In this document: positions 10,935-53,973 of the stretch, piece after piece
Layout of the letters: the number at the start of each line of letters is the position of its first letter
Position numbering within the stretch: position 1 is the stretch's first letter
Assembly (NCBI GenBank): GCA_023334545.1
Contig: JAADVB010000119.1
Span: forward strand, 1-53,973
Direction of reading: 5' to 3'
Origin: Salisapilia sapeloensis CBS 127946
Lineage: Eukaryota; Protista; Oomycota
Length of the DNA stretch: 53,973 nt
Position numbers and translations under genes: made by a program
Notes under the pieces: model-generated
Databases searched by the model: none
The model's input: the letters and a program-made list of their open reading frames with translations, nothing else
Told to the model about the DNA's origin: nothing

Positions 10935-12914
10935 TTATTTGCTACTAACTAGACACTTGTAGTACGAAATGTTGTTCTGATAGAGTGCAAGACAGGTGAG
11001 AATATGCCGAGATTCCGTTGCTAGTAGTACATGGCTTTCCTGCAAGCGTACGAGTACTCTCAGCACTAGATGTAAAGCCTCTGGAAGCTTGAAATCATAG
11101 TACGATACGTTGAAACTATTTGTGGATTGAAGGAGGTAGCCAAAGCCGACCTCGGATAGTAATCGACCTGAGTATACTGCTTCCTCATCTACTCTTTGCT
11201 TCCAGACTCGATGCTCATCATCATCCTGCCGCATCTGTACATACTCTTCTTTGGCTTTATCTAGCTTTACTATATTCTGTCGGATGTGGCCGAGGAGTAC
11301 GTTCAGATCTTCATCTGAAGTGGTAGAAGTGTCTGGAAACAAGTCGATGAGACGCGTGTTCGATGTCTCAGCAAAGTAGGAAGCATTGGCATAAAACGGA
11401 GAGTTTGAGCTTTGAGCTAGCTGCGTGAACACATCGCGATTGCTGTTTGTAGTGGACGTTGTGACATTGGTAAAGCCTAGAATAGAATCTGCAAACTCGT
11501 CGCAATTGCGATCTTGAGGTGAATACCAGACTGTAGAAGGTGCTTGGAGACCTAATGACAAAGCGGAAACTTCGGCGTCGAAAGCTTGGTTGATTGTGTC
11601 GAGTATCAAATCGATACGACTTGATCTTTTGCTTTCCAATGCAGCATCACCGGCAAGGATGGCACTTAATCTAGAACGCAATGACGGTGTGTAGATCGTC
11701 ACGCCTGACCGGATATTCTTCGGAGATGGAGTATCATCTCGTGTATCGGATGATACGTACTGAGCTCGACATTGACAGATCGGTACGGTGTGCCCAGGAA
11801 AACATGGAAACGAGTACAAGCTTCGCGTGCCATTTACGAGTACGTCTTCGAGCGAATTTGTATCATTCGTCTCCTGATTGTTGATATTAACTGGTAAATC
11901 TGTTACTTCACTTGGTGAAGTTCTTTCGAAAGCATCTACGAATACTAATTGGCATCCAACTGGTGTGTCCATTTTTTTCAAGATCGGAATTCCAGTGTTA
12001 AAGTCGATCTCAAGCATACGCTGAAGTGCTTTGTCGAAAACGATCGACTCGTTCTCAGTTGATAGATCTGTAAACACTGGATGGCGATCTTCTGTATTTC
12101 GATATGACGAATCTGCACTTGTCGATATGTTCATCCTAGCATGCAAAAAATCTCGTGCAAATAGAATGATATGCCTCGAATCGGTCAGTCGAGCTTTCCA
12201 TGGCCAGTGATAGTTTATGGCAGGGATATGTGCGGGTGGAAGTTGCTTGTCATTTGTGTAATAGATTGCTTCGTATCCTGGATATGGTGTCCAATGGCGT
12301 GCATAAGATGGATAGATGGCATATCTACCTGAAGGTTCCATTTCCCTCGAGACGTTGTTAATCTCAAGAGCTTCCATTTCCCATCGTATTATCTGCTCAT
12401 CACTTGGCGGAGAGATGTTAAACCTAGCGTAGAGGTCCGTAGCATTCATATTCGCTAGTTCGTGTAATTGTACTTGCTTCCTTATCTTTTCTCCGTACAT
12501 AGCGTCGGCCATATTGGCCAGTTTCTCCTTAAAATTCGCTGCGAATGGAAAGGCTAGTTCCCGAAGAAAATACGTTCGGAGTGCTTTATTACGTCGTTCA
12601 CCAGATCGAGTATCAGGCATTGGGGACACAAGAGTGTATAGCATGAAGCGAGATGCAGCGGATGTGGCGTTCCATCCTTGTGGGGAAAAGTACCATTGAG
12701 ATGGAGGAGATAGATCACTCGTTGCATTCTTCCACATATCCTCCCATGATATACCATTGTAGTCTACAGGACCATAAAGCGCCGATTCATTGATTGGTGC
12801 TTCCACTTGCCGTGCATTGGGCATGCTGGTGGAACCTGTTAACTCTGACAATGCAGGCAAGATGTGGGCATATAGGACGCATAGCGCCCATATAAGTATG
12901 ACGTCGTAACGCAT
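10935..12914 (-). CDS. Uncharacterised secreted or surface glycoprotein (~659 aa; 3' end may be spliced)
   Basis: Long ORF with a hydrophobic signal peptide (MRYDVILIWALCVLYAHILPALS) and about 14 N-x-S/T sequons by my count; no family recognised. Confidence 0.7.
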   Translation of the reverse strand: MRYDVILIWALCVLYAHILPALSELTGSTSMPNARQVEAPINESALYGPVDYNGISWEDMWKNATSDLSPPSQWYFSPQGWNATSAASRFMLYTLVSPMPDTRSGERRNKALRTYFLRELAFPFAANFKEKLANMADAMYGEKIRKQVQLHELANMNATDLYARFNISPPSDEQIIRWEMEALEINNVSREMEPSGRYAIYPSYARHWTPYPGYEAIYYTNDKQLPPAHIPAINYHWPWKARLTDSRHIILFARDFLHARMNISTSADSSYRNTEDRHPVFTDLSTENESIVFDKALQRMLEIDFNTGIPILKKMDTPVGCQLVFVDAFERTSPSEVTDLPVNINNQETNDTNSLEDVLVNGTRSLYSFPCFPGHTVPICQCRAQYVSSDTRDDTPSPKNIRSGVTIYTPSLRSRLSAILAGDAALESKRSSRIDLILDTINQAFDAEVSALSLGLQAPSTVWYSPQDRNCDEFADSILGFTNVTTSTTNSNRDVFTQLAQSSNSPFYANASYFAETSNTRLIDLFPDTSTTSDEDLNVLLGHIRQNIVKLDKAKEEYVQMRQDDDEHRVWKQRVDEEAVYSGRLLSEVGFGYLLQSTNSFNVSYYDFKLPEALHLVLRVLVRLQESHVLLATESRHILTCLALYQNNISYYKCLVSSK

Positions 12915-20467: not shown

Positions 20468-21478
20468 ATGCTACGAGCATTCCAGCGGTCTCAAGCGAGA
20501 CTCTCCCTCCATATACGACCTAATGCATGGATGAAACAATTTAGCTCGGAAGGAATGGACTTTGACCAATTTTATTCGGTAGAAGTGGGTTCGAAATCTT
20601 TAGTGAGCTACATTGATATTGGACCGACGGATTCGACGATCGACGCGACCAAAGCGCCGACTATTGTGATGCTGCATGGAACTCCAGGGAGTTTCAACGA
20701 TTTTCGCTACATGGTACCACATTTGCAAGCGACCAATCGAGTCATTGGCATTACCTTGCCAGGTTTTAATGACTCCAAAGTGCTCGATCGAGAACACTTT
20801 TATGACCTCACGACAAACGTACAAGGCGCTGCCTTAACATATGAAGCTTTGCAGGAAATACTAGGTGCTCGCAAAGGTAGTGGAAACCCGAAAAACCTGT
20901 TCGTACTTGGTCATTCGTTTGGTGGGCACTCTTCCATCCACTTGACTGCCTTGGACGCGAAAGAGCAAAAGCTTCATGTTAAGGGACTCGCACTTGTCTC
21001 CTCAGCAGGGACGCGTCCTCATAAAATCTTGACCCCCTCCTTTAACGCCATCATCTGGAGCATGATTTCTTCCAAATTACCACTAGTGGAGCCAGCTGCG
21101 CGATATATCACTCGCTTGTTCATGTTGCATATACTCAAGTTTCCAAACAAAGGCGACGAAGACTACTTTATCGCTGGTTTCGCTCGAGCTGCGACAGCTG
21201 AATTTGCAAAAGTCTCCGAAGAGTTGGATCGATTGTATGACTTACCAACTTTCTATGCGTGGGCAAAGGATGACAGTCATATTGAAGAAGAAGTGTTCCA
21301 GGAAGTCGCTGCAAAGAGCCAGGCATTTGGTCCTCGCCTCGTATTTGCTTCTGGAGGACACAATATCCAAAAGACAAGAGCTGAAGTCATTTCTGAACAC
21401 CTTGTGGAATGGACGAGGAATGTTTTAGATGGGAAAGCCCAGAAAAAGTACTCGGCAACACCAGTAGAGCTTCCGTAA
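20468..21478 (+). CDS. Alpha/beta-hydrolase (serine hydrolase), tandem copy 1
   Basis: HGTPGS oxyanion motif, GHSFGG nucleophile elbow, KDD acid, GGHNIQK catalytic His. Confidence 0.9.
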   Translation: MLRAFQRSQARLSLHIRPNAWMKQFSSEGMDFDQFYSVEVGSKSLVSYIDIGPTDSTIDATKAPTIVMLHGTPGSFNDFRYMVPHLQATNRVIGITLPGFNDSKVLDREHFYDLTTNVQGAALTYEALQEILGARKGSGNPKNLFVLGHSFGGHSSIHLTALDAKEQKLHVKGLALVSSAGTRPHKILTPSFNAIIWSMISSKLPLVEPAARYITRLFMLHILKFPNKGDEDYFIAGFARAATAEFAKVSEELDRLYDLPTFYAWAKDDSHIEEEVFQEVAAKSQAFGPRLVFASGGHNIQKTRAEVISEHLVEWTRNVLDGKAQKKYSATPVELP

Positions 21479-21565
21479 CTTGAAATAAAGTTTTCTTTTC
21501 TTTTCTTTGTTCACCTCCATCTGAAGTTGACGTCAACAACATCGCTGATCGGCACATTTGCAAAA

Positions 21566-22546
21566 ATGCTTCGTCTCGCACATCTCTCTCCACGGGTTTC
21601 TACGTCTCGATGCCTTGCAATGGCTTCCAATAAGGCTGGGAATCGTGCATTTTCCTCACGGATCGAATTGCCGGAACCCAAGTTTGTCCAAGTGGCCGAG
21701 AAAGCATCCATCGAGTATATTGATGTCCAACCAAAGTCGTCGACTGAAAATAGACCGACAATTGTGCTCATGCATGGAGCTCCTGGGACGTATAAGGACT
21801 TTCGGTACTTGATACCTCATTTGCAACACTCTGCTCGAGTCATTGGCATTAATTTGCCTGGTTTCGGTCAATCCCAAGCTCTAGATGACCGCAACTTTTA
21901 TGACCTCGCTGGCACCGTTGCTGGTGCACAAGTAGCCATTGATGCTTTAGAGCAAATTTGCAACCCCGAAGAAAAGTTATTTATACTCGGACATTCCGTC
22001 GGTGGTCATTCAGCCATCCACGGAACAGCCATTGCTCGCCAACGTGATGTACTGAATGTGAGTGGTCTGGCTTTGCTTTCATCAGCAGGCTTAAAGCCAC
22101 ACAAAGCACTCACTCCATCATTCAACAGCTTTATTACAGAAGTGGCGAAAACGAGATTACCAGTCGTAGAGCCTGCAGCTCGTTGGGTATGCAAGAAAGT
22201 ATTCGTGGACTATCTCGGGTTTCCAGGTCGATTCGACACTTCGTATTACACGGCTGGCTTGGTGCGTTGCGCTGCGATGGATTACCCCCAGATACAGAAG
22301 GATGTGCATTCGTTGCGTGATTTGCCAGGGTTCTTTGCCTGGACTAAAGACGATCATTTGATCGAGGAAGACATCTCGAAAGATGTGGCAGATACAAATG
22401 CCTTTAGCCGGCAGATTGTATTTCAAGAAGGAGGACATAACATGCAGAAGACGAGAGCAGAAGTGGTTGGGAAGCTTTTGGTCGAGTGGATGGACCTCGT
22501 TGCTGATGGAAAGGGTGGGTTAGAGATGTCGTTGGAGCTCCCATAG
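21566..22546 (+). CDS. Alpha/beta-hydrolase, tandem copy 2
   Basis: HGAPGT, GHSVGG, KDD, GGHNMQK; collinear with copy 1; ATG at 21566. Confidence 0.9.
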   Translation: MLRLAHLSPRVSTSRCLAMASNKAGNRAFSSRIELPEPKFVQVAEKASIEYIDVQPKSSTENRPTIVLMHGAPGTYKDFRYLIPHLQHSARVIGINLPGFGQSQALDDRNFYDLAGTVAGAQVAIDALEQICNPEEKLFILGHSVGGHSAIHGTAIARQRDVLNVSGLALLSSAGLKPHKALTPSFNSFITEVAKTRLPVVEPAARWVCKKVFVDYLGFPGRFDTSYYTAGLVRCAAMDYPQIQKDVHSLRDLPGFFAWTKDDHLIEEDISKDVADTNAFSRQIVFQEGGHNMQKTRAEVVGKLLVEWMDLVADGKGGLEMSLELP

Positions 22547-23401: not shown

Positions 23402-25582
23402 CTACATGACCGGCTTGGGATGCACCGTGCCCTCCTTGAGGATGCTCCGGAGCCAGTAAGCAAGTAGCGTCGCCATAGGACGCTCCGATGGATCTCTTGA
23501 CAAACATTGCTGTGCAATGTCATAGATACGAGTGGGGCACGTTTCGCTGAAATCAATCTTGATCGTGCCTGTGGCGATACGGTTCATAAGCGCAACTTCT
23601 GCCAACGGCTGTCCCGTGACGTTTCGGACGTCCGAGTACGGCAGATTGTGCGTATCTAGCTCCGACAGAATGACTCCAAGCGAGTAGATGTCTGCGCTGG
23701 TACTATAGTCCGATGACCCGGTCAGGATCTCTGGAGCTAGCCACTTGGCCGTTCCTACTCCTTTCGTCATCGTCGCATTCTCCGATTCAAAGCGCGAGAC
23801 ACCAAAGTCACTCAACTTGCCTCGGATATCTTCCGTCAGAAGCACGTTCCGAGACTTGAGATCACGGTGGACGATCGGAGGGTCGAATGAATGCACGTAC
23901 ACGAGAGCCTCAACGATATCGATGGCGATGCGGAGCTTCGTATCGGTCCACTCTGTCGAACTTTTTTCCTGGTCGAGATACTGTCGAAGGTCACCCTTTT
24001 CCATGTACTCAAACAGGCCTTGGAGGTCCGACTCCATCGTCCACGCAACACCGACCAACTCGACGACGTGCGGGTGATCGAGGCTACCCACGAGCTTGAG
24101 TTCGTTGACAAAGTCGTGGATGCGGCTTCGAGTAGCATGCTCCTTCAACACACGTTTGGACGCGAGATATCTGATTCGACGATACAGCACGAGATGCACG
24201 ACGCCATAGGCTCCAGCACCAAGCACACGCACATCTTCAATGTCTTCCGATTGTACTTGCTTTGCTAGCAACTCATCGTCATTCCAAATAGATGGTAGGT
24301 TGATGGCTGTATCCATCGGTCCGGTCTTCACCGTATTTGCCACCGTCTCGTCCAAATTCTTCCCAGTATGACGTCGTCGGTAGCACCACCAGCCTATGCC
24401 CAAAGCGACGATAATACCAACGCAAACGCCGACAACTGCGCCGATGATTGTTACACTACCGCCATCGCCAGATTTACTGGTTGTGGCTTTTACATTTTCG
24501 CCTACGCAGACGATAAGTTGGTCTCCAATGCGCTTACGAGTGCTGTTTCCACATTCGACGTCAACTTCATCGATGTTGTCGATCTTGAAGGTCGTGAGAC
24601 CATTGAGAACATCGTATAGTTCCTGACTTACCGTTCGATCTGTCAATGGATTGTTGGACAAATCAAGCTCCTGAAGGTTGGTGTATTGCGATAATACAGG
24701 AGGGATAGAGTCGAGCGAGTTGTCCTCGAGAATGAGTGACTGGATGCTGGTGGAAACGAGCTCGAAATTGGTTAAATTGTTCATTCGGAGCGTCAGTGTG
24801 AAGACATCGGGAAGGCTAGCGTTCTGTCCGATCGACTCGATAAAGTTCCCAGACAATTCCACATCTTCTAAAGATGTGACGGACATAAAGTTCGTAGGAA
24901 ATTCTGTCAGCATCAAATTCCGAAACGCCATCTCCTTTGTGTTGGGAGGAATGAGCTTGGAGACGTCTATCTCTTCTTTGCTCATGTCGATGTTCATAAG
25001 TCCAAACAACGTGACATTAGTAGCACTGGCGAGGAAATCAGGTTCGATTGTCACTTTCGCCACTTTACCTTTGACGTATGTTGTCAAAGTACCTCCACCA
25101 GAAATATAAACGCTCGTGTGTCCGGGCGGAATGGTGAGAGGGCCGACACTGTCCACATGGTCGTCGTTCTTAAATGGTATGAAGGCCATTTCATACGGTA
25201 ATGCGTCAACCTGAGCTTGCCATTTCTCGTTCCCTGCCTGCTCTTTTTCAAAGGAGCTATTGTAGTCGCCGTAGGGAATGTAAAATAAGGAAAAAGATTG
25301 GGGTCTACTCGGGTTTTCCCAGGCGAAGCATTCGTATCGGCAGTTTGTCGATTCTTCTGGCTTCATACAAGTGCTCGCGTTGCTTATAAACTCCGGGTCT
25401 GGCCAGCAATCTTTGGTCCACTTGTTTGCATTGTACGCAATGCAGAGGTCAGTGAACCCTTCGGAGCAGTGTGCTTCACAGTCTTCTGAAGTCACATACA
25501 ACTTTTTGTTGGAACATTCGGCTGCCACTAAGGAAGGAAGCAACCACAGTGCCATTAGTGCACCATATCGAAGCGTTACCAT
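23402..25582 (-). CDS. LRR receptor-like protein kinase (TKL group), single exon
   Basis: Signal peptide; Cys-rich N-terminus; LRRs (LEDVELSGNFI, LQELDLSNNPL); TM IIGAVVGVCVGIIVALGIGWW; kinase LGAGAYG, HRDLKSRN, DFG, WLAPE. Confidence 0.95.
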   Translation of the reverse strand: MVTLRYGALMALWLLPSLVAAECSNKKLYVTSEDCEAHCSEGFTDLCIAYNANKWTKDCWPDPEFISNASTCMKPEESTNCRYECFAWENPSRPQSFSLFYIPYGDYNSSFEKEQAGNEKWQAQVDALPYEMAFIPFKNDDHVDSVGPLTIPPGHTSVYISGGGTLTTYVKGKVAKVTIEPDFLASATNVTLFGLMNIDMSKEEIDVSKLIPPNTKEMAFRNLMLTEFPTNFMSVTSLEDVELSGNFIESIGQNASLPDVFTLTLRMNNLTNFELVSTSIQSLILEDNSLDSIPPVLSQYTNLQELDLSNNPLTDRTVSQELYDVLNGLTTFKIDNIDEVDVECGNSTRKRIGDQLIVCVGENVKATTSKSGDGGSVTIIGAVVGVCVGIIVALGIGWWCYRRRHTGKNLDETVANTVKTGPMDTAINLPSIWNDDELLAKQVQSEDIEDVRVLGAGAYGVVHLVLYRRIRYLASKRVLKEHATRSRIHDFVNELKLVGSLDHPHVVELVGVAWTMESDLQGLFEYMEKGDLRQYLDQEKSSTEWTDTKLRIAIDIVEALVYVHSFDPPIVHRDLKSRNVLLTEDIRGKLSDFGVSRFESENATMTKGVGTAKWLAPEILTGSSDYSTSADIYSLGVILSELDTHNLPYSDVRNVTGQPLAEVALMNRIATGTIKIDFSETCPTRIYDIAQQCLSRDPSERPMATLLAYWLRSILKEGTVHPKPVM

Positions 25583-33913: not shown

Positions 33914-35486
33914 TCGCCATACTGAGTGAATAAGATTGCCCAATTGAGTAGTCTTTTTAACTATATTGATCTTCAGATTGCTTCTTGGCTTGGATATAAA
34001 TACATCGAGGTAGTATATAGGATACGTTGTTCTGCTTTTGCCTTTGTAATCGAAAAGCAATTTTTTGTCCTACTGGGCTAGTGCGAAGGTGATGTTCAGG
34101 ACAAATGACTTTGTTCAACAACTTATTTGCTTTTATTTATGTCTATTCCGATATGTTACAAGCGGGTAGCACTCGTCTTTATCAGTGGTTCTTGATAAGA
34201 GAAGAAGCCTCAAACAGGGTGGCTTACTTTCCTCAACTGCAAAACATGAGAAGTAGCAATATGTTAAACATGGATGAAATACTCCTGCCATCTATACAGT
34301 AGCAATGAAGTCAAAGTCTATGCGATAGCACCATCGTAGATGGTCGCTTTCGTTGAATTTAGAACAAGCTGCTTTCAGATTAAGGCCATTTACCTCATTG
34401 ACGATTTCTAGCAATCAGTTGTCGTTACTTTTAAGTTTTTATCTCTACTACTGACTGCACTTTTGTCACTTCATCCGTTACAATAACGATTCTACACCAG
34501 TCGAGTCATTCACTAGCGACGTTCGTCATCATACATACTGTACACTGGTGAACTTGGTATGCCCAGATCTTGTCGGGACCAGCGAAAGAAACAATATTGA
34601 TGGTGAGGCAAGTTTGCCTCGGTTACACTCCCTTTAAAATAAATTCAAGAGAAAAGAATAACTCTGTCAAGTAGAGGTCACCTCTACCTATATCATCGTC
34701 GTGATCTGTAAATATTGTCATGGGGAATTTCGCTGTATCGACACAAATTGAAATCCGTTGTTCTACATTGCTTCGATTTTAAGATACTTAAGATACTGAA
34801 TCTTCAATCAAAAAGCTATAAGCTTTTCGTGTTCATGGAAAATGTTCGTGTAATAGTTATCGTTACGGCTCTAAAGGACTCGTAGTGCTATATTGATGAG
34901 GCGAAAGCATCTGAACAAGTACAAAACAATAAGTCAATTTGGTCGTACCAGTGCTAGATAAGATAGTCAATCGATCTTTGTTTGATCCTTTCTCGTCCTA
35001 CTCGTCGAGTGATAGCAACAAACAACATTATAAGTATACACATCCTTTGTGTCCATAATCTTAGTCGACTAGAGTGCATAATGAATGCTTGACAACCAGC
35101 GCAAAATGCTGCGCGCCAATTGAACTCGATATACCAGAGGCGATTGAACAATGCTTGTAAGCACATAAACGTTGACTTCTCAGTTATCTAGGGCAGAATC
35201 AAAACATAAGTGGCTGTGAGACTTGGAAATGTAGGTTATAAATTACGCTCTGAGAACTATCATTAATACGACAACGACGCCAAATGCCGCTTCAAGGTAA
35301 ACTCGGCAAGCTTCAAGTTCCATCCCTCCTATCATCGTTTGCAATAATAGAGTAAAATATTCTTCTATCTTCCACCTTTCTTTCCGCCTTATCTATAAAA
35401 TCAGCTCACAAGATAATAAAGTTATTGTGTCGCTTCATCCATTATACCAAGCTCCTGACCATAACCCTGACACAACCAACGTAGCC

Positions 35487-35499
35487 AAAAAAAGAAAAA
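35487..35499 (-). terminator. Pol III oligo-T terminator of tRNA-iMet
   Basis: TTTTTCTTTTTTT on the minus strand immediately 3' of the tRNA. Confidence 0.75.
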
Positions 35500-35500
35500 G

Positions 35501-35572
35501 TAGCACTTGGTGGTTTCGATCCACCGACCTTTGGGTTATGAGCCCAACACGCTTCCCCTGCGCCAAAGTGCT
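35501..35572 (-). tRNA. Initiator tRNA-Met (anticodon CAT)
   Basis: AGCACTTTGGCGCAGGGGAAGCGTGTTGGGCTCATAACCCAAAGGTCGGTGGATCGAAACCACCAAGTGCTA: A1:U72 pair, three G:C pairs in the anticodon stem, GAUCGAAA T-loop typical of eukaryotic iMet. Confidence 0.97.
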
Positions 35573-35709
35573 TTCTTACTTTGCCACTTACTATAAACTA
35601 TATTAAGCATCTAAATATATCATTTAATAAATGTCGTAAAAGCTATTTTGGACAAATAAATTTCTTGTTATTTACATATCAAGATTTTCTATTGATATAA
35701 GTATCCTGC

Positions 35710-37871
35710 CTATGCATCCAACACATTGTGTAGTTGCTCAACAAAGTGCTGAATATCCTCCGTCTGAATCTCCATCGCTGAGCTAGTAAATCCATCCTGA
35801 CGAAAGTTCGCGCCTGCTTCCGTCGCTGCCAATCGAAACGCCGTGCCCAACGTACTATCAACATCTTATCAGTACCTCTACTAGTCTCCATATGAAACAT
35901 AAATACGTACTTGCGATGTACTTCTCCAGGAGTCGACGGACAAGTGATCCCGACGACGAGATAGCAGTTCTGAGACGGGTTCCATGTGATCAGCACCAGC
36001 GGTACAATGCTTATAGTCCGTTCTTCTCCATCCTCTTGCGTCTTTCCTCCCCACTTACCGCTTCCACGATGAACATTCAGAAGGAAGAGAGATAGCTGGG
36101 TCAAGACGTCCGCACTTGCAAAGAGCTCTTGGTCTTTATCACTCACCTCTAGACACACATACCGAAAGTGCTTCACACGTACAATCAACTTGCGTTCAAG
36201 CACGGATACACCAACACGTACGATAGCTTTCTTTAACGCCATGCTCACGTTGACGCCACTCTCCATCAAATGAGCAGACTCGACATCGTGACAGGTCAAT
36301 GCGTTTTGAGCCAAGTAAAAGTTGGGTGCTTTATCCGGCGTCAAGGAGCTTTCGGCTGACGAGAGGAAGCGATCCCATGCACCGGCAACGTCGTGATGTT
36401 TATTCTGATGCGCTTGAGATTGGAAAATGGATGAGATGTAGGAAGCTGGGGCTTCCAAAAGTGCCTGTAGTCCGTACACAGCGTCAGCAGCGCTTAATTC
36501 GAAGTGGAAGGCAAGTTGTCGGACGAAGGAGTCGTAGAGCAAGTCGTCTAGTCCAAAGTCAGGTGCGATTTCTTCAGCTTGTCTCTTTAGCTTTTGTTTC
36601 ATCGTCAATGGCATGTACGAGAATCGCTGTTGACTCTGGCGGAGGGAGAAACCCATGCGAGCTAAAAGGACGTGGAGCGATGTATCTCCATCTGATGCAG
36701 TTCCGATGCGCAATCGGTGTGCATGGTCTTGGTACAGTCCGAGTTTGGAAGCAACATAGTCCGAGTAGTACATGGAGTCGTAGAGAGACCAGTGACGATG
36801 ACACATGAAGCGAAAGTCTTCTTCTGCCGCGATACGACCATGGGAATATCCTGGGTTAGTTACTTCGTCCGTATAGCTCTGCGTAGCCGTTTGAGATGGA
36901 GGATCGACGGCTAGTAGCTCTTCACGGAAATATTGGGCTAGCAGGGCGTAATTGTCTTCATCAATTTGCTCCAGAATGAATTGCTTGGTAAGTCCAATCA
37001 TTGCGAACCATAAGAGATCACGATGAGCACCATTCATCTGTTGCGCTAGCTCGTACGCTACAGAAGCCGCTGGCGCTCCGTAGAAGGAGCCACGGTAGTA
37101 CTCCAAAAGCTCTGTTCGACGTTTACGCTTGGCTTCTTTATTCGATACTTGCGCAGTCTCTTCCTGCGATGCTGCTTCTGTGTCCTCAGTTGCTTTTTCA
37201 TCCTGAGCTTCCGTTTCCATTCCTGCATCGATTTCAGTATCATTCTCAGTAGATTTATCTGCTTCAGGCGGTTGATTTTCCTTATCAACGGCTTCAGCTA
37301 GGTTTTCGGAAAAGTCGACTTCTTCTTCATCGGAGGATTCGTTCATGTCTTCTCTATCATTGTCGTTCTCATCTTCACTTTCGCTTTCATCTTCTGACAT
37401 GTCTTCATCCTTCTCCTCCTCCTCTTCTTCAATATCCGAGCCATCCGCAGGAAAATCATCAATATTTTGTGCGCCATCGTCAAACACGACGATCTGTTGG
37501 TCGTTGTCATAGATGTTGGTCAAGTGTATCGGACGATGACTGTCCAGCACATACAACTTGACTTGCGGCGGTGGAGAAAGTAGCCTAGTAAGATTCACAA
37601 GCGCCCCGCAGTTGACAAAAACAACTGATCGTAGCTCTTCCGAGTTCTTCAAGTGCGTTTCTGCAACTCTTGCAATATCTGAGTAGCCTCGTACAGGTAC
37701 TAGCGTATAGCTAATAAAATCTGTGCGTAGCAATCGCGTCAATATATTGCTTGCGCACAGTCCATCCACATCTTGTGCGACGAGCACAAGCACACTCGAG
37801 CCACCACTTTGCAAAGCTGCATGTTTAATCTGGCCGTACGCAATGTGAAAATCAGAGCGTGGCCAGAGCAT
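35710..37871 (-). CDS. CDC45: Replicative helicase cofactor CDC45 (one intron near the 3' end)
   Basis: DVDGLCA, DSHRPIHLTNIY, acidic insert, LRHWSL-like MCHRHWSLYDSM, LLARMG. Spliced C-terminus NTLGTAFRLAA...FRQDGFTSS...HFVEQL. Confidence 0.95.
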
Positions 37872-40807: not shown

Positions 40808-42310
40808 ATGTCCGACTCCTCCAAGCCGTCCATTGCACGCCGCGATTCTCGCATGTCCGTTGATGCTATGCTGAAAGATGCTTTTAATCGAGTGGATCAG
40901 GATCAGGATGGTATCGTGAACCACTTCGACATCGACAAAGCGCTTCGGTCCGCTGGCTGTCGCTTTTCGACGGACGAAATGGCGACGTTAATGCACCGGA
41001 TCGATCCGCATAACAATGGCAAAGTCACTTTTGAAGATTTTAAGGCCCTTCACGAAGCCTTTATCGACCGTACATTCCATGATTTCGATCCGTCCAATCG
41101 CGGGTACGTCGATGACCAAGGTCTGCAGGAAGGTTTGCGTCAATTAGGTGTCCAAGTGACATTGGAAGAAGCGCAGAGTATGCTCCAGCAGCTCCAAAAG
41201 TCGGATGAAAACCAACAGCTTCGTCTTCGACCAGATGAATTCAAAGACCTGTATCTGATTCTCCGAGCTAAGATGCTGTCGTTCCCGAATCTCGAGTACC
41301 TCTTGTGGGATCCAAACGTCCGGGAGTTGTCCAAGCACTGGTGGAAAGCCAGTGTCGAAATCGGCGAAGGTGGATTGCGTGCACCTTTGCCAGAAGACAA
41401 GCCGCTGGTGTCGCCAGCGCCTCAAAACGACGCGACCAAGGTGTCTCCGACCGTTAAATTCTTTGGTGGCGCCTTGTCTGGTGTCGTTGAAGCTCTCATC
41501 TTAACTCCTCTGGACGTTACCAAGACGAGGTTGCAACTCGATAAGATTAAACAGTACAATGGCATGCTCGACTGTGGTAAGAAGCTGTTCAAGGCTGAAG
41601 GGCCCAAGGGTTTGTACAAGGGTTTCACGCCCTGGACCATCCACGTCGTAACCAAGAACGGTACGCGCTTCTACTTTAACGCCATCTATCGAAAGCTACT
41701 TGCGGATAAACATGGACAAGTGAGTGGCTCGAAGGAGTTCGTGGCAGGTGCCATGGCTGGTGCGACGGAAGCCGTGCTCATCGTCACGCCGTTCGAAGTC
41801 GTGAAAACGAGATTGCAAGGACAGAACATTGTCGCGGGGGAAGTACCAAAGTATCGTGGTCCGATCCATACGACAGCGACGATTATCAAGCAGGAGGGCG
41901 TGACAGCCTTGTGGAAGGGTGTGTCGCCAACGATCTTCCGACAGGGACTGAATCAAGCATGCAGCTTCTGGTCGAATACGTTCGTGAAGAGGTACGTCTG
42001 GAAGGTGCAGGATGGAGACCACCTTCCGGCGTGGAAGAGTGTCTTGACAGGTATGATGGGTGGTGTCCCAGGTCCGTGCATCAACTGTCCGATGGACGTT
42101 GTCAAGACGCGGTTGATGGCGCAGGAGACGATTGCTGGACAGGCACCCAAGTACAGTGGTATGGTGAACGCACTGACGACGATTCCGAAGGAAGAAGGCG
42201 TGTTGGCCTTGTACAAAGGCTTGGGTCCTCGTCTCATGCGTCTCTGTCCGTCATACGGCATCCAGTGGCTTGTTATGGACCAAGTGTCTGCCTACTTTGC
42301 CCGCAAGTAA
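40808..42310 (+). CDS. Mitochondrial carrier (succinate/fumarate SFC1-like) with N-terminal EF-hand domain
   Basis: EF loops DQDQDGIVNHFD, DPHNNGKVTFED, DPSNRGYVDDQG; three carrier signatures PLDVTKTRLQ, PFEVVKTRLQ, PMDVVKTRLM. Confidence 0.9.
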   Translation: MSDSSKPSIARRDSRMSVDAMLKDAFNRVDQDQDGIVNHFDIDKALRSAGCRFSTDEMATLMHRIDPHNNGKVTFEDFKALHEAFIDRTFHDFDPSNRGYVDDQGLQEGLRQLGVQVTLEEAQSMLQQLQKSDENQQLRLRPDEFKDLYLILRAKMLSFPNLEYLLWDPNVRELSKHWWKASVEIGEGGLRAPLPEDKPLVSPAPQNDATKVSPTVKFFGGALSGVVEALILTPLDVTKTRLQLDKIKQYNGMLDCGKKLFKAEGPKGLYKGFTPWTIHVVTKNGTRFYFNAIYRKLLADKHGQVSGSKEFVAGAMAGATEAVLIVTPFEVVKTRLQGQNIVAGEVPKYRGPIHTTATIIKQEGVTALWKGVSPTIFRQGLNQACSFWSNTFVKRYVWKVQDGDHLPAWKSVLTGMMGGVPGPCINCPMDVVKTRLMAQETIAGQAPKYSGMVNALTTIPKEEGVLALYKGLGPRLMRLCPSYGIQWLVMDQVSAYFARK

Positions 42311-42384
42311 GTTGTCAAAAGGATACAGTGTAGCTAGCATCAAAGATAAAGACATGAACAAAGAGATATGTTTCCACGTCTTTT

Positions 42385-44149
42385 TTATTCATTTCTTGAT
42401 AAGAAGTAGAGATCTAGTGTCTGTGGCGCAGACATGTCCATGTCTTCTGTCGATATGTGTGGAGAGCAGCCTCCTATGTATGTGATCTGGACGTCGCTGG
42501 TGTGTACATCGTCGAGTGTCTTGGATAGCGGGATGGAAGCGGGGGTGATGACGTACATTGGATGTTCGTCATGAGTTACAAAATGAGCAGCAACGACACT
42601 TTCCAGTACGCGTGTATCACCTCCAACGTCCGATACGTTCGTTTGGTCTAGTATGGATGAGAGGAGGAAGCGAGGTGGCATGTACGTCTTGTAGAAGACC
42701 AAGGTGGATGCTAGTTCGACGGTATTAGTAAAGCTACAGGACGCTGGGAGAGTTGATGGGAGGGTGAGATGGCTGGATAGTGCCAGCAGCATGGGTATGA
42801 TACCACCTTGATGCAAGTATCCGTAGAAGACAAGTACGACTGCATTAAAGACGATGGAGAAGATTGCCATTGCCTTGCTGCTAGGACGGTAGAAGAGGTG
42901 GAGAGGGACGAGTAGTGGGAGTAGGAAGCGAGCTTCTTGATGAGGAGCAATGGAGAGGCAGAGGAGAGGGAAGAGGATGGAAGAGAGGGTAAAGACGGTT
43001 GGGAGGGAGGATGCTTTCGAGTGGAAGAGTACGAGTGGACCGAAGAGGAGAGGCATATTGACGACTGCGTGGGTAAAGCGAGGATGGACGCCATGAAGCT
43101 CCAGGTTATCATACTTGGTGTTGTAGAGGAAATTGTTGTAGGGTGCGATTACAAGGCCTTGGAATGTCGTTGGGAAGGATGCAAAGTACCAAGTATCCAA
43201 CGTCACAATGAGGCTTGAAACTAGGAGGAAGGAGAGAAGGCCCTGCAAGCCGGTGAGGACAACATTTCCTAGTCGAGACATGGTAGACGCCGACGTCTTC
43301 TTTGTCCATGCAGCGACATAGAGCTGGTCTTGGGTATGAACAAGATAAATGCCAAGCGGGAAGAAGAAGAAAATGAACGTAAAACGGGTGAAGAAGCCAA
43401 TAGCGAGGAGACAGCCGAGGACACTTGTCTGTTGATGGAGGCAACCAAAAAGAAGACGCTTGTGCTACTTTTGATTGAGTAAAATAGTTGTGATCATGAG
43501 TATGATGCAAACTTACAGGATTGAGGAGGAAGAGAGCAGCTAGGGAGAGTGTGAAGATAAAAGTCTCGAACGTATTGGAAAAGGGCCTGGTCAACAGAAG
43601 TAGAACAGGCCAGCTGCTTGCGTACAAAAGCAGCGTCCGGAAGGCGCTTGTCGTCTGCAGTTTCCTTGCCAGGCAATACATGAGGCAATCTATTACGCAG
43701 TTTAATATGGTGCTAACTGAGATTTTGTAATAGTTTAGTACCAGTAAGTAAAGAGAGAACGAAGAGGAGTAGTCTTGGGGCAATGAGTAAAAGATATCCA
43801 TCAGAGGCGAGTCCGAGACTTGCCAAGACTTTGTATGGTAGTCCTGCAACGATCATGCTAAGAATATTAAGTGCCATTAAATATGTATACAAACGGCGTA
43901 GTGGTATATGAGTTAAAAGGAATAGTACGGGAAGAGAATGGATCGATTGGGTGACGCAGGATCAAATTCCCATGGCGTAAAAAGCTTCGAAGCTTGGGTT
44001 TCAGAAATAAAATGGCGTGCCATGATCTCCTGACTTTGAAAAAACTCATCCGGGTGTATCATACCCGTGGAGGATATGCACACACCCAGTCGTATCAGCA
44101 AAAGTACGCCATAAAGTAGCTTCTCGGACATTTCGATTGTTCGTGTCAT
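42385..44149 (-). CDS. PIGZ: GPI mannosyltransferase 4 (PIG-Z/Smp3), multi-exon
   Basis: GMIHPDEFFQSQE, PWEF...RSILFP, TRPFSNTFET, NLELHGVHPRFTH, PHQEARFLLPL, GYLHQGGIIP. Confidence 0.9.
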
Positions 44150-46899: not shown

Positions 46900-48345
46900 C
46901 TAGAGGTATGCGGCGATCATTTTCGCCACAGGTCGAATCCAGTGACCAGTCTTCCAGCTAAACATCCCCTGGAGGTTCCGTTCCGGTCGCTTCCACAACT
47001 GGTCCGTCACGACTTCTGCTGGTTCATGCATGCTTTCATACTCGTGTTTCAAGTCTCGTTGCAAACGATCGTTTTTCGTGTACAATACGACTTGAGATTC
47101 CAAGTCATATCCATACGACCGTTGTCCAAAATTAGAGCTCCCAAAGACAGTAATCCAAGGCTTTCGCTCCGTCCGACTTGGACTCCACCACATCCCTTTG
47201 CCATGGAATGTCCAGTCGGTCTTTTGAAATTCACGAATCGTCGTCTCGTATTTCTTGTTCGGACGTAGATGCTGTCTCGAACGTTCATAGAAATCTTGCT
47301 CAATGAGTGAATAGGCCATTGGCAAAGCTCCTTTGACGTCCGTGGCTGTGTAAAAACCATTGGCAATAGGTGCAGCAGTTAGGACGTCCAGATCGACGTG
47401 AGATTGGATGAGGAAATCAGATAAAAAGCGAGGAAAATTGAGATATCCGGATGCGATTGCTAGATGTGAGTCTTGTGGTAGCTCTTTTACGAACTGGATG
47501 AGCATCCGTTCATCTTGTGTGACATCCAAAGGTGAGAACTGGATGGTTGGAGACGCCCAGGCATCCATTTCTTCTGTCGCATCAAATGATGACGGACTTT
47601 GATCGGTTTCAAATAGCTTTTCCAATTCTTTTTTCAAGTCGGAAGGATGCGAGGACGACGGAGGAAGGAGTTCATACCCTTGCTTTTCATGTACTTGAAC
47701 GGTATATGAATGCATAGTCAAGAGATGAACGAAAGAGTGATAGAAAGTCGAGAGACCGCCTTTTGCTGCATCCATTTCGGACGAACCACAGTGCTGCATG
47801 AATACGTATCGATCCTGCCGGTTGGTAAAATAGTCAGAGGAGAGGTTGGCACCACTCATGACTAGTTGATCGTCTACTAGGTACACTTTGGAGTGCAATA
47901 CACCCATCGTCTCGTTAAACGGAGGCGGAAACATCGCCTTGAGACCTTTTAGTTGTGGCACTTTGTAGAGACTCAAGTGGACATTGGATGGGAACTCTCG
48001 GAGAAGAGGTGAGAGCATACCGACAGAGCTATGGATGTCTCCGCCACGCTGACCACGAGAGTAGTCGAGTACGATAGTTACTTGGAGTTCTGGTCTCTCT
48101 CGAAGTCGTTCCCCAAGCGATGATACAAGGCGTTGTTCGAGCTCACCTGTACCTAGATATAGCGAAGAGATGCTAATACGATGCTCGGCTTTCCGAATGT
48201 TGTCCAAGAGTTGCTCATAAAATTGCGTTGGAGTCGAAAGGAGCGAAATATCGGCACTTTTTAATGGGAAGACGTGCGACTTGCTCGATACTGATGCGAA
48301 TAATGCATCCACGTCCTCCTCCTTTTGTATATGTTCAGAAGACAT
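46900..48345 (-). CDS. PGS1: Mitochondrial phosphatidylglycerophosphate synthase (PLD superfamily)
   Basis: ISSLYLG, DYSRGQR, HSKVYLVD...SGANLSSDYFTNRQDRY, WTFHGKG...GSSNFGQRS. Confidence 0.95.
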   Translation of the reverse strand: MSSEHIQKEEDVDALFASVSSKSHVFPLKSADISLLSTPTQFYEQLLDNIRKAEHRISISSLYLGTGELEQRLVSSLGERLRERPELQVTIVLDYSRGQRGGDIHSSVGMLSPLLREFPSNVHLSLYKVPQLKGLKAMFPPPFNETMGVLHSKVYLVDDQLVMSGANLSSDYFTNRQDRYVFMQHCGSSEMDAAKGGLSTFYHSFVHLLTMHSYTVQVHEKQGYELLPPSSSHPSDLKKELEKLFETDQSPSSFDATEEMDAWASPTIQFSPLDVTQDERMLIQFVKELPQDSHLAIASGYLNFPRFLSDFLIQSHVDLDVLTAAPIANGFYTATDVKGALPMAYSLIEQDFYERSRQHLRPNKKYETTIREFQKTDWTFHGKGMWWSPSRTERKPWITVFGSSNFGQRSYGYDLESQVVLYTKNDRLQRDLKHEYESMHEPAEVVTDQLWKRPERNLQGMFSWKTGHWIRPVAKMIAAYL

Positions 48346-50058: not shown

Positions 50059-50644
50059 GACGAGCTAGTGGACCGAGCGCGTTATGTGTGGAGCAGCGAC
50101 ACGAAACCTTTCCGCGACCTTCGCGCAACCTTTGCATGTGGTCAGATCGGGTCTATCCGGATCTGTAACCGTCACACGAAAATCTATCGGACCAGATCTT
50201 GGAGTGGATTCACCTGACGATGTTCGTCTTCACGGGCCATGTCCGGACCATTCATTCCCGAACAATCCATCCTTTCGCTCGATTGTGCTTCCTTTTTTAG
50301 AATTTTAGGTAAATCCAACGAGCGGGAACGAATGGCTTCATGTCAAGTCCTGTACGGCTCTCTTGGTGACTCTTTTTGAATATGCTACGGTAGATCTCCA
50401 GACAATCCGTCCGTCGATTCGTAAAACGTCGATAGCGAGTCTGTTGGACAGATATGAACTAGAAATCTTCTTGACACCCAGACATTGTTTTTCCTTTCCG
50501 TGGACATTAAGCCTTCTCTTCCGACGAAAGAAGTCGAACACCCAGCTGGGAGAACATCATTCTTGCCCTCTCGCTTTCTTAAACGAACCCACCTCGGACA
50601 TATTAGGTACTTCATTACGTTCTTTTGCTTACCAAGATCACAAG

Positions 50645-51085
50645 ATGGAAGCGCAATTCGTTCCTGTGAGTGAGGAATTGCGGTGCCGATATACCTCCAA
50701 GCGATGTGAAAATCCTCGTACGCACAAAAAGAATGGGACACTGCACAAATTTTGCCATTACCATCGAGAACGTGCGAATCGGAATCAAAAGCGACTGGAT
50801 CAACGTCGACGACAGCAGCGATTACAAGCAAAGGCGAGTGAAGAAAGAGTTGCAATGCAGTGTCCGGAACCAGATCCGCGATGGTTTGAAGTCTATTGTC
50901 AACCAACAGACGTAACCAAGGACACAGCTGCGATGGCCAACCTTTACTCGAGTAGCACAGAGGACAAGCCAGAGCTTATTGATACAGCATCCTACGTTAT
51001 AGCTAGCTTCGACTCGATCGAATTGGAAATTCTAAGAGAGCTTTTGCTCAGCAGTGACGAAGAAAGCAATCAGAGCAAGCTGTAA
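50645..51085 (+). CDS. Small C3H zinc-finger-like protein, copy C
   Basis: CRYTSKRCENPRTHKKNGTLHKFCHYHRERANRNQKR with C-terminal LRELL; ATG at 50645. Confidence 0.82.
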   Translation: MEAQFVPVSEELRCRYTSKRCENPRTHKKNGTLHKFCHYHRERANRNQKRLDQRRRQQRLQAKASEERVAMQCPEPDPRWFEVYCQPTDVTKDTAAMANLYSSSTEDKPELIDTASYVIASFDSIELEILRELLLSSDEESNQSKL

Positions 51086-52766
51086 GCAGCCTCAGACGGG
51101 TCATCAACCAAATTATTAGATTGCGCCCATTGAGAGTAGACAAATAGATTTAGGATAGTTGCCCACAAGCTCTTGCATGTGACCTGGAAGTGCGATGACT
51201 TGGGTACGTTTTAGCAACAAGAAAGATATCCATTCATGTATCATATATGCCCACTTCCGTTCCTTGCATGCCGTTGTTTAAATTGCCACAAAGTTGTGTA
51301 CAGGATCAACCGCTCTTATTTACAGATGACCAAGCTAATTAGAAAGCATATATTCTTTATCGAAAATTGAATTTGTGATAACACCTTTGGGTAAAGATCG
51401 TATCCAAACTCTCTGGAGTTATCAACTACAAGTCATTTTTCTCACAATGCAGCTCGATCGTCCATGTAATTGGTCCTGGGGTATTCGGAGCAGGTGAAAG
51501 CGCTGTTTGAAATGAAGTTTCTTCACGTGTCTTTAGTTGATCGTCATACCGAAAGTATCATTAGTTGCTGCTCCCTTATCTTTGGCTGTGCTTGACTGAA
51601 GCCACTTAAAGTCGATTCGATGTATTGCCAGTTTTAAATTATCATTCATGATGGCTCCAAGTACCGCCTCCGTCTCGTTTAAGAGGTATAACGTGTCGTA
51701 TATGAGGTTCTAACCTGTTTGAAGATGCTAAATTACCACAGCGCAATAGCTACAGTAGCTTCTAGTTAAGATAGTTTCATGGAGGTAAATAAAATTCATG
51801 CCTGCAAGGTCCCATTTGTGTCCATCATACGCGCTATCTAAGCATGCTAGAGACCGGTGAGGTTAGGAAGGTAATTATATGTCGTAAAGAGCTAGACGTC
51901 AACGTACTCCACTTTATAGTCCAGTCTACTTTGAATGTGAATTCCCAGTTTCATTAAATACTGACTCAGTGTGAACATGACCGAATGGTCGAAGGTCAAC
52001 ACCATACGAGCAGCAGAGGACTAATGCCAGACATTTTCACGTGTGTATCACAATCGACGGTGTGGTAAAGCTGTGGACCTTCTTTTTAACCTTGGCATCG
52101 GGATATTGTAATAGCCGTCTATGCAAGGGTGGATGGTGTACCGAGTTCTTTAACTAAAACTAGCTCATGGGGTATGCTTGCAGTAGATGAGGCAACTAAC
52201 AAGTTTCGTGGTAACTTTTTATTTTGAGGTGTTATTTGTGCGCAAATATGATGCGTTTCATGATCGATTTCAAGTAACATCGTGGAAAAGCACAAAGCTC
52301 CGATGAGTCAAAGCTGCTCTTCTTTTGCAGCCAACGAGATGAATTGACGTGCCAAGAGGAGTCTTGCGTCCGTTGCAACTAAGTTACTGCATCACTCGTA
52401 TGTTATCATTTGCGCATTGACTCGCAGTACTTGCGCTTGTCTCAATGCACTCGTCCGTTAGAGCAAAGTATGATCAAGGTGTTTTCGCGCAGAAAGTATG
52501 AACATCTTCAAAGATATCTTCATCGCCTCCTCGTATCATTTAGAATAGCAGAAATCGTTCGTCTGATAAGGATGTGCATAGACTAATGCAGCGTGTAGTT
52601 GTCGGATGAAATCCACATGACTGCCCATCCACTGGACACGCCTACGTCTGGGTGTCAAGCCTGTTGTGTAGCCGGAGAACTAGTCAAGTAAAGCGCTTTC
52701 GTCATTTCCACTTGATATTCCCCACTGTGATCATATCGGAATACTACGAGTGAAAATTACCTTGTT

Positions 52767-53973
52767 ATGAATCGGTCGGCAATCCTTCTCGTGATCCTCA
52801 TCAACACGCATTTCCAACAAAGCGTGCTGAGCGAAGTTTGTACCGAGGAAGAGGAAATTAATTTAATTGAAATGCAAACAGAATCAAACAAATTTCGATA
52901 CGATAATGTTTGCGTGGACATGGAAACTTTGACCTACGACTGCAAGGCTTCATGCGTCGAAGCGTATCAAGAATTGTATAAAGAGCTTCCAGGCTGCGAT
53001 TTTCTCTCCAAGTTATTTGGATACGTGAATATAAAGGAACTGCATCGTGCCTTCGAATATTTATGCAAAGAAGACATCGACAGCAAGAATGCTTCGAGTT
53101 TCGACTACCTACAAGGTATTCATGCACCTTTGTTCTTATGTGTGCGTGTATAGCAAAGTTAATCAGTCTGTATATATAGATGACTGGCACAACATAATCT
53201 TCCCAACCTATGCATCCGTGTCGAGCGATTTGAATGAGCGTAGGCTACTTCAAGTGGTTTCTACGGATTCTGCAGCATCCACTGATGAAGGCACTAGACG
53301 ATATACGGCTAGATCAGCAATAGCGAATATAATCTCAGCACTAATACCTCAAGGTGCTGTAGAATCTATCGCTGATGCTGCACTTGCGAATATTGGCTTA
53401 GCATCAAATGTTGGCGATGTAACAGCGGCCGTTGGTATTGCATCAGACCTTTCGAGCTCAGCATCAGCTACCAGTATGTCAGAGGATGCTCCAAACACAG
53501 CTAAACCCCAAATTACTATCTCCCCTTCGAAAAGCTCGTCAAAAGATTCCAACGGTTCACATGAAGAAAGCCTAGTAGACGAGGGACCCAGCACACTCGT
53601 CATCGTTATTCCGATCGTTATTGCTCTGCTCATTTTATCTGTTGCGGCAGTCTGGTGGTTACGTCGACGTAAGTCAGTTTCGGTGACGAAGAATGAGGAG
53701 AGTGGGTACACGCAAGATATGGCAAAGACAATGACCGAGATAGAAGTCCAAACTCTGCCAGCAACCTTTTTCGGAGACTCATCAGACGGCTTCAATTTCT
53801 ACGACATCTGGAGCGACCGAGAGCTCATCGATAAAAAGCTCAACTTCTCAGAAATCCAGGACATTAAGGTCCTCGGATCCGGGGCTTTCGGTGTCGTATG
53901 GCTAGTGTCCTACTACAACACATACTACGCGTCCAAGAGACTCGCACGCAACGTCGTCGACCCAGTAGCATTC
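52767..53973 (+). CDS. Receptor-like TKL kinase with an elicitin-like ectodomain; 3' partial; predicted intron 53116-53179
   Basis: Exon 1: signal peptide and six Cys. The open frame from 53029 to the window end encodes an S/T-rich stalk, TM VIVIPIVIALLILSVAAVWW, RRRK, then IWSDRELID...VLGSGAFGVVWLV...YASKRL. Confidence 0.8.

Follow-up and report, generated by a model that had tools for sequence, protein, structure and literature searches.

A predicted receptor-like kinase with a lineage-specific six-cysteine ectodomain in the oomycete Salisapilia sapeloensis

The 3' end of a 53,973-nt stretch of DNA from Salisapilia sapeloensis CBS 127946 (contig JAADVB010000119.1, positions 1 to 53,973 of the forward strand, analyzed here in full and referred to as the window) probably carries a gene of two or more exons, cut off after its 5' two-thirds, that encodes a type I single-pass receptor-like kinase of the oomycete-specific group that includes LRR receptor kinases. 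Its ectodomain bears a six-cysteine module that, as judged from sequence searches, is lineage-specific and matches no known family. The initial annotation had described this module as an elicitin-like (ELL) domain fused to a kinase. The label is borne out by none of the sequence tests applied here (Pfam, PDB sequences and protein collections), and the resemblance to ELL proteins is one of layout only.

Results and Discussion

Layout of the predicted protein

Direct reading of the DNA confirmed each sequence feature listed in the initial annotation, and their coordinates are collected in Table 1. Translation from the ATG at 52767 gives an N-terminus of strong hydrophobicity (MNRSAILLVILI...) and, after it, six cysteines located at residues 25, 49, 59, 63, 77 and 100. 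An LPGC motif is present in exon 1, and the 23/9/3/13/22 spacing of the six cysteines has its sole occurrence in the window here. The putative signal peptide was judged by hydropathy alone. The mean hydropathy of its core, SAILLVILI, is 3.0-3.9, and of all ATG-initiated ORFs in the window that reach 70 aa, this one has the highest 8-residue Kyte-Doolittle mean in its N-terminal core (3.86).

Table 1. Coordinates of the sequence features at the candidate locus (window numbering)
Feature	Position	Strand	Basis or remark
Initiator-like promoter element TCATTTC	52702-52708	+	65 nt 5' of ATG 52767
Exon 1, 116 codons and first base of split codon	52767-53115	+	Frame, codon log-odds
Probable signal peptide, residues 1-22	52767-52832	+	Hydrophobic core SAILLVILI; cleavage tentatively placed after VLS
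Six-cysteine module, C25 to C100	52839-53066	+	Cys gaps 23/9/3/13/22
Proposed intron, 64 nt, GTATTC...TATATAG	53116-53179	+	Low GC, negative coding score
Exon 2, truncated by window end	53180-53973	+	Open frame, codon log-odds
Ser/Ala/Thr-rich stalk, 138 residues, predicted extracellular	53182-53595	+	Residue composition
Single predicted transmembrane helix	53596-53661	+	Highest 19-residue hydropathy of the protein, 3.25
RRRK, putative stop-transfer	53662-53673	+	Directly after transmembrane helix
Juxtamembrane motif IWSDRELI	53806-53829	+	Common with LRR receptor kinase of the window (IWNDDELL)
Protein kinase domain start, Gly-loop GSGAFGVV and beta3 lysine (ASK)	53860-53973	+	
Gly-loop GSGAFG	53875-53892; V at 53893-53898	+	
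Lysine of ASK (beta3)	53935-53937	+	

The six-cysteine module is probably mostly helical, judging from the helix content seen in low-confidence AlphaFold2 models computed without an alignment. Two such single-sequence runs gave mean pLDDT values of 40.1 and 41.2. In exon 2, the frame is open up to the end of the window. Its first 148 residues, which comprise the stalk and the first transmembrane residues, consist of 17.6% serine, 14.2% alanine and 6.8% threonine, and the Pfam matches of the stalk, to families of mucin-like or single-pass membrane proteins, are weak and all below threshold. For the hydropathy scan along the whole protein, the two exons were joined with an X at the split codon. 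The positive-inside charges that follow the transmembrane helix would place the kinase on the cytoplasmic side.

A probable single spliced gene

It is quite likely that exon 1 and exon 2 form a single spliced gene; the exact splice sites are less certain. The 64-nt interval between them begins with GT at 53116 and ends with AG at 53179, and because its length modulo 3 is 1, its removal leads from the frame of exon 1 into the frame of 53182. A codon log-odds table was built from ten confident genes of the window, for which the mean is +0.12 per codon in frame and -0.15 out of frame. By this table, exon 1 reaches +0.18 per codon when read in frame, against -0.18 and -0.12 for the other two frames, and exon 2 scores +0.12 in frame versus -0.24 and -0.17. 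The stalk by itself reaches +0.06 per codon in the exon 2 frame versus -0.23 and -0.26 in the others, and this frame alone is coding-like over 53182-53475 of the stalk. Along a sliding profile, positive values in the exon 1 frame extend from 52767 to about 53080, beyond which the score drops sharply; in the exon 2 frame, values stay below zero as far as about 53130 and are above zero from about 53172 onward. The proposed intron has a negative coding score in both frames and a GC content of 0.34, compared with 0.41 and 0.48 in the exons.

The promoter element upstream of ATG 52767 has counterparts at other genes in the window: the TCATTYY motif is also found 90 nt 5' of CDC45 and 56 nt 5' of a GH5 gene, against an expectation of 0.098 per 200 nt. 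No initiator-like motif precedes the alternative ATGs at 53089 and 53122. Codon statistics, promoter motif and the signal-peptide-like core together favor a single spliced gene.

The bounds of the intron can be drawn in several ways. Both frames, that of exon 1 and that of exon 2, stay open across 53026-53153, and when the flanks of candidate GT..AG splices were joined computationally and each product was checked for stops, 138 pairs gave an uninterrupted product. The initial annotation had joined a signal peptide and cysteine module to the stalk, transmembrane helix and kinase through an intron at 53116/53179. The joining most likely holds, whereas the exact bounds are unproven because of these 138 in-frame pairs. 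Short alternative introns lie at 53098-53179, 53140-53179, 53146-53179 and 53116-53158, and in all of them the cysteine module and the stalk are retained. The donor consensus in Phytophthora is GTRNGT. The proposed donor, GTATTC, differs from it at +5/+6.

We regard it as unlikely that the locus instead holds two genes, namely a 128-residue secreted Cys-rich protein (52767-53153) and a transmembrane kinase that starts from an internal ATG at 53089, 53122 or 53476. The frame of exon 1 does continue to a stop at 53151-53153, and that of exon 2 is open back to 53026, but the kinase coding sequence would then overlap that of the secreted protein, on the same strand. Moreover, the sole upstream ATGs in the exon 2 frame, 53089 and 53122, fall in the part 5' of about 53130 where this frame is non-coding-like (-0.15 per codon between 53026 and 53181). 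The alternative N-terminus is also poor as a signal peptide (hydropathy of 1.6 versus 3.0-3.9), and the internal ATGs have no initiator-like motif upstream. With a start at 53476, only a short ectodomain would be left to the kinase and the coding-like stalk sequence 53182-53475 would go unexplained. Points for two genes are the weak donor site GTATTC and the frequency in oomycetes of small secreted Cys-rich proteins and of transmembrane kinases with very short ectodomains. Very improbable, in our estimate, is a decaying or catalytically dead copy (pseudogene or pseudokinase) in which exon 1 would be an orphan without conserved function. Predictions class many of the clustered oomycete TKLs as inactive; here, however, both frames are intact over 1.1 kb with gene-like codon usage, and the Gly-loop and the beta3 lysine are intact as well. 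The collections searched returned no homolog of exon 1 or of the stalk, which would agree with such a copy but is also expected from the absence of the organism's own genome and of its near relatives from these collections. A single spliced gene is the reading followed below.

Kinase and receptor class

The part of the kinase within the window is about 45 residues long and ends after the beta3 lysine, with HRD and DFG lying beyond the window. The last 100 residues of the candidate are 33% identical (E 1e-12) to a 726-residue LRR receptor kinase encoded at 23402-25582 of the same window, and the two proteins share the motifs IW.D.EL and VLG.GA.GVV..ASKR. The kinase fragment also gives a weaker match to the P. 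infestans LRR kinase of the PGP synthase neighborhood. On account of its identity to the LRR receptor kinase of the window, the kinase start was provisionally grouped with oomycete receptor-like kinases, and this sequence comparison supports a place for the candidate among the oomycete receptor kinases. Given the spliced model, the predicted layout is most likely that of a type I receptor-like kinase, with a signal peptide, one transmembrane helix and a C-terminal kinase.

Published oomycete kinomes make this architecture a known and abundant class. In P. infestans, 99 kinases have transmembrane domains, and all of these belong to TKL; a signal peptide is present in most, and many of their ectodomains are without a recognizable domain (PMC3019232). 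In S. parasitica, 131 kinases with transmembrane helices were counted (PMC3681718), and an oomycete-specific clade of transmembrane kinases has been described (PMC10463195). By class, the nearest kind to the candidate is the oomycete transmembrane TKL receptor-like kinases (oomycete subfamilies 2-4 of Judelson and Ah-Fong 2010; 'clade III' of PMC10463195). It has in common with them the predicted signal peptide, the one transmembrane helix and the kinase on the cytoplasmic side, as well as a juxtamembrane segment and kinase start close to those of the LRR receptor kinase encoded 28 kb away, and many members of the class likewise have ectodomains that contain no known domain. In contrast to the LRR receptor kinases, the candidate has no LRRs (neither exon matched an LRR family in a Pfam search), and it presents a small six-cysteine module, with no detectable relative, on a long Ser/Ala-rich stalk.

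The LRR receptor kinase gene at 23402-25582 (- strand) is complete, with LRR_4/LRR_8 and Pkinase matches. Its kinase is of the same type as that of the candidate, and its architecture is that of the Phytophthora sterol-sensing kinase SSRK1.

Comparison of the cysteine module with elicitins

Five slices of exon 1, among them exon 1 itself, the mature module, its C-terminal half and the unspliced ORF, were compared with Pfam. None matched the Elicitin family (PF00964) at E<=10, and no other Pfam family was matched by these slices at that threshold either. Elicitin structures have been solved, but a HMMER-type search of PDB chain sequences with three slices retrieved no elicitin. The larger protein collections were searched with each exon on its own. 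An exhaustive phmmer search of exon 1 against 1.84 billion representative proteins yielded two matches, neither of which is a true homolog or an ELL. One of the matched proteins is a bacterial T9SS repeat protein and the other consists of a seven-fold ACBP repeat; both matches were rejected as artefacts of internal repetition: in proteins of 6-8 near-identical repeats, weak per-repeat scores add up. A word-based search of a 5.8-billion-cluster collection found no homolog of exon 1, and with exon 2 it returned nothing under a length rule that left out full-length relatives. Two JGI metagenome scans gave no homolog, and the PGP synthase neighborhoods of Globisporangium splendens and P. infestans hold no relative of exon 1. 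The absence of homologs is due in part to the absence of the organism's genome and of close relatives from the collections. When one of the models with a pLDDT of about 40 was compared with the PDB by Foldseek, no match was found below E = 1, and the query model is unusable for this comparison.

The case for a relationship to elicitins lies in the cysteine spacing and in the order of the parts. Compared with the elicitin spacing of 23/23/4/14/23, one of the five gaps of the module is exact, three are one residue shorter and one is 14 residues shorter. Under uniform placement of the four inner cysteines, a match of four gaps within +/-1 has a probability of about 7e-5 (81 of 1,150,626 compositions), a figure not corrected for having picked the family and the tolerance. 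The stretch from C59 on can, we presume, be lined up with cryptogein through C...C, a hydrophobic i/i+3/i+4/i+7 pattern, P.CD, G.V.N[VI] and a phenylalanine four residues before the last cysteine. The elicitin fold itself is helical, with a beta-hairpin and an omega loop around a hydrophobic cavity and with 1-5, 2-4 and 3-6 disulfides.

ELL proteins (Pfam PF00964; classes of Jiang et al. 2006) have a signal peptide and six cysteines in a module of about 76-80 residues in common with the candidate, along with four of the five cysteine gaps to within one residue and an S/T/A-rich region that is followed by a membrane anchor. The published ELL layout consists of a signal peptide, the cysteine core, the S/T/A-rich region and a GPI anchor (PMC8231210, PMC3090399, bioRxiv 10.64898/2026.04.09.717489). 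The candidate differs from ELL proteins in having no HMMER-detectable similarity to them, in a second gap of 9 and not 23, and in an anchor that is a predicted transmembrane helix running into a kinase in place of GPI. Published surveys define ELLs by a match to PF00964 (PMC6502433), so by that definition the module is not an ELL. Overall, we consider an elicitin-type fold of the ectodomain doubtful, albeit with some chance of being correct.

No report of an elicitin-kinase fusion was found in the literature. In the text supplements of the S. parasitica genome paper, the 'Elicitin' passages listed are plain secretome or figure entries, and none of those listed is tied to a kinase.

A speculative role in sterol sensing

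The initial annotation had attributed sterol sensing in Phytophthora to an LRR kinase working with separate elicitins. This is correct, and the kinase is SSRK1 of Phytophthora sojae (PMC11551405). The likeness between the SSRK1-elicitin system and the candidate would be that of a receptor kinase coupled functionally to an elicitin-type extracellular module. The difference is that the ectodomain of SSRK1 is made of LRRs and its partners are free ELI-type elicitins loaded with sterol. If the cysteine module were an ELL, both partners of the SSRK1 system would be joined in one chain.

Improbable, in our view, is the reading in which the module is a divergent ELL domain fused covalently to the kinase and the protein is a one-component receptor that binds sterol or another lipid directly. 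Its first gap of 23 and gaps 3, 4 and 5 (3/13/22 versus 4/14/23, each one short) agree with elicitins to a degree that is improbable under uniform placement, the stretch from C59 on presumably follows cryptogein, and the domain order is that of ELL proteins with a transmembrane helix where GPI would be; the organism also falls on the Pythium/Phytophthora side of the oomycetes. These points are set against a Pfam Elicitin model that finds no slice of exon 1, PDB sequences and 1.84 billion representatives among which no elicitin or ELL was retrieved, and the definition of ELLs used in the surveys. The C2-C3 segment, which in canonical elicitins contributes the omega loop bordering the opening of the sterol cavity, is 14 residues short in the candidate; moreover, the first predicted helix is very acidic. 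Even a true ELL may not bind sterol. SOL7, the one ELL assayed in the SSRK1 study, has a KD of 513 uM for sitosterol and a sealed cavity, the ELLs tested with SSRK1 showed no sterol-enhanced binding (PMC11551405), and the residues that contact ergosterol are divergent in ELLs according to the literature. Direct sterol sensing by the candidate is speculation, weakened by the shortened C2-C3 segment and by the poor binding of sitosterol to SOL7. There is a very slight chance that the module is a minimal elicitin fold devoid of the omega loop, joined to the kinase so as to report a lipid or other hydrophobic ligand directly, which would make the protein a single-chain counterpart of the SSRK1-elicitin pair. 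Such a protein could possibly have arisen from an ELL gene in which the hydrophobic tail that signals GPI attachment gave way to a transmembrane helix and kinase.

Position of the organism and genomic neighborhood

A PGP synthase gene is located at 46900-48345 (- strand) of the window. Its product shares 57-61% identity with the enzymes of Globisporangium, Phytophthora and Pythium, and 45-50% with the enzymes of Albugo and Saprolegniales. In the PGP synthase tree, it forms a long branch in a polytomy on the Pythium/Phytophthora side, outside Albugo/Saprolegniales and near no sampled genus. Matches and tree together place the organism among the oomycetes. The genes for PGP synthase and CDC45 are near neighbors in Globisporangium splendens and are about 9 kb apart in the window. 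In P. infestans, an LRR kinase gene lies about 5 kb from the PGP synthase gene (L002 16395-19011). A 447-residue P. infestans kinase encoded beside PGP synthase was also considered and set aside as unrelated and cytoplasmic.

Several other features of the window were recorded. Two adjoining genes of the DUF1057-type alpha/beta-hydrolase kind, at 20468-21478 and 21527-22546 (+ strand), apparently represent a tandem duplication. An ALG9-like mannosyltransferase at 42385-43849 (- strand) is split over two overlapping ORFs in different frames, through either an intron or a frameshift, with many GT..AG options that fit, and a local GC-skew spike (0.30) at 42001-44000 spans this gene. A low-GC stretch (0.40) at 34001-36000 lies directly downstream of the 3' end of CDC45. 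The 659-residue ORF at 10935-12914 (- strand) has a signal-peptide-like start, eight cysteines and no Pfam match, and its product is probably secreted. The ORF directly 5' of the candidate, at 50363-51085 (+ strand), contains a basic Cys/His-rich stretch (C..C......FCHYHRERANRNQKR) that resembles a nucleic-acid-binding motif, and it has no Pfam match.

Proposed mode of action

According to the model we favor, cleavage of the signal peptide would expose a module of roughly 80 residues, probably helical and held by three disulfides, at the cell surface. The module would sit atop the stalk of roughly 140 residues, which is likely disordered and O-glycosylated in keeping with its Ser/Ala/Thr-rich composition. 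One transmembrane helix and the RRRK stop-transfer would follow the stalk, with the conserved juxtamembrane segment and the kinase turned to the cytoplasm. By analogy with other single-pass receptor kinases, a ligand or a partner protein may bind to the cysteine module. Such binding would change the oligomerization of the receptor and activate the kinase by autophosphorylation, again as in single-pass receptor kinases.

Implications

Transmembrane kinases number about a hundred or more in oomycetes, with ligands known for almost none of them. SSRK1 is the one case known to have been deorphanized, and it senses sterol via separate elicitins. As it stands, the candidate is just a further receptor-like kinase whose ectodomain is unclassifiable and apparently lineage-specific, from a lineage that is sparse in the databases. 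The value of the locus is that of a candidate for a fold and binding test, a modestly interesting lead and not a finding. Should the elicitin fold be confirmed, its combination with a kinase would be a new architecture, and a kinase with an elicitin module in its own chain, if true, would provide a simple, testable model for the perception of host lipids by sterol-auxotrophic oomycetes.
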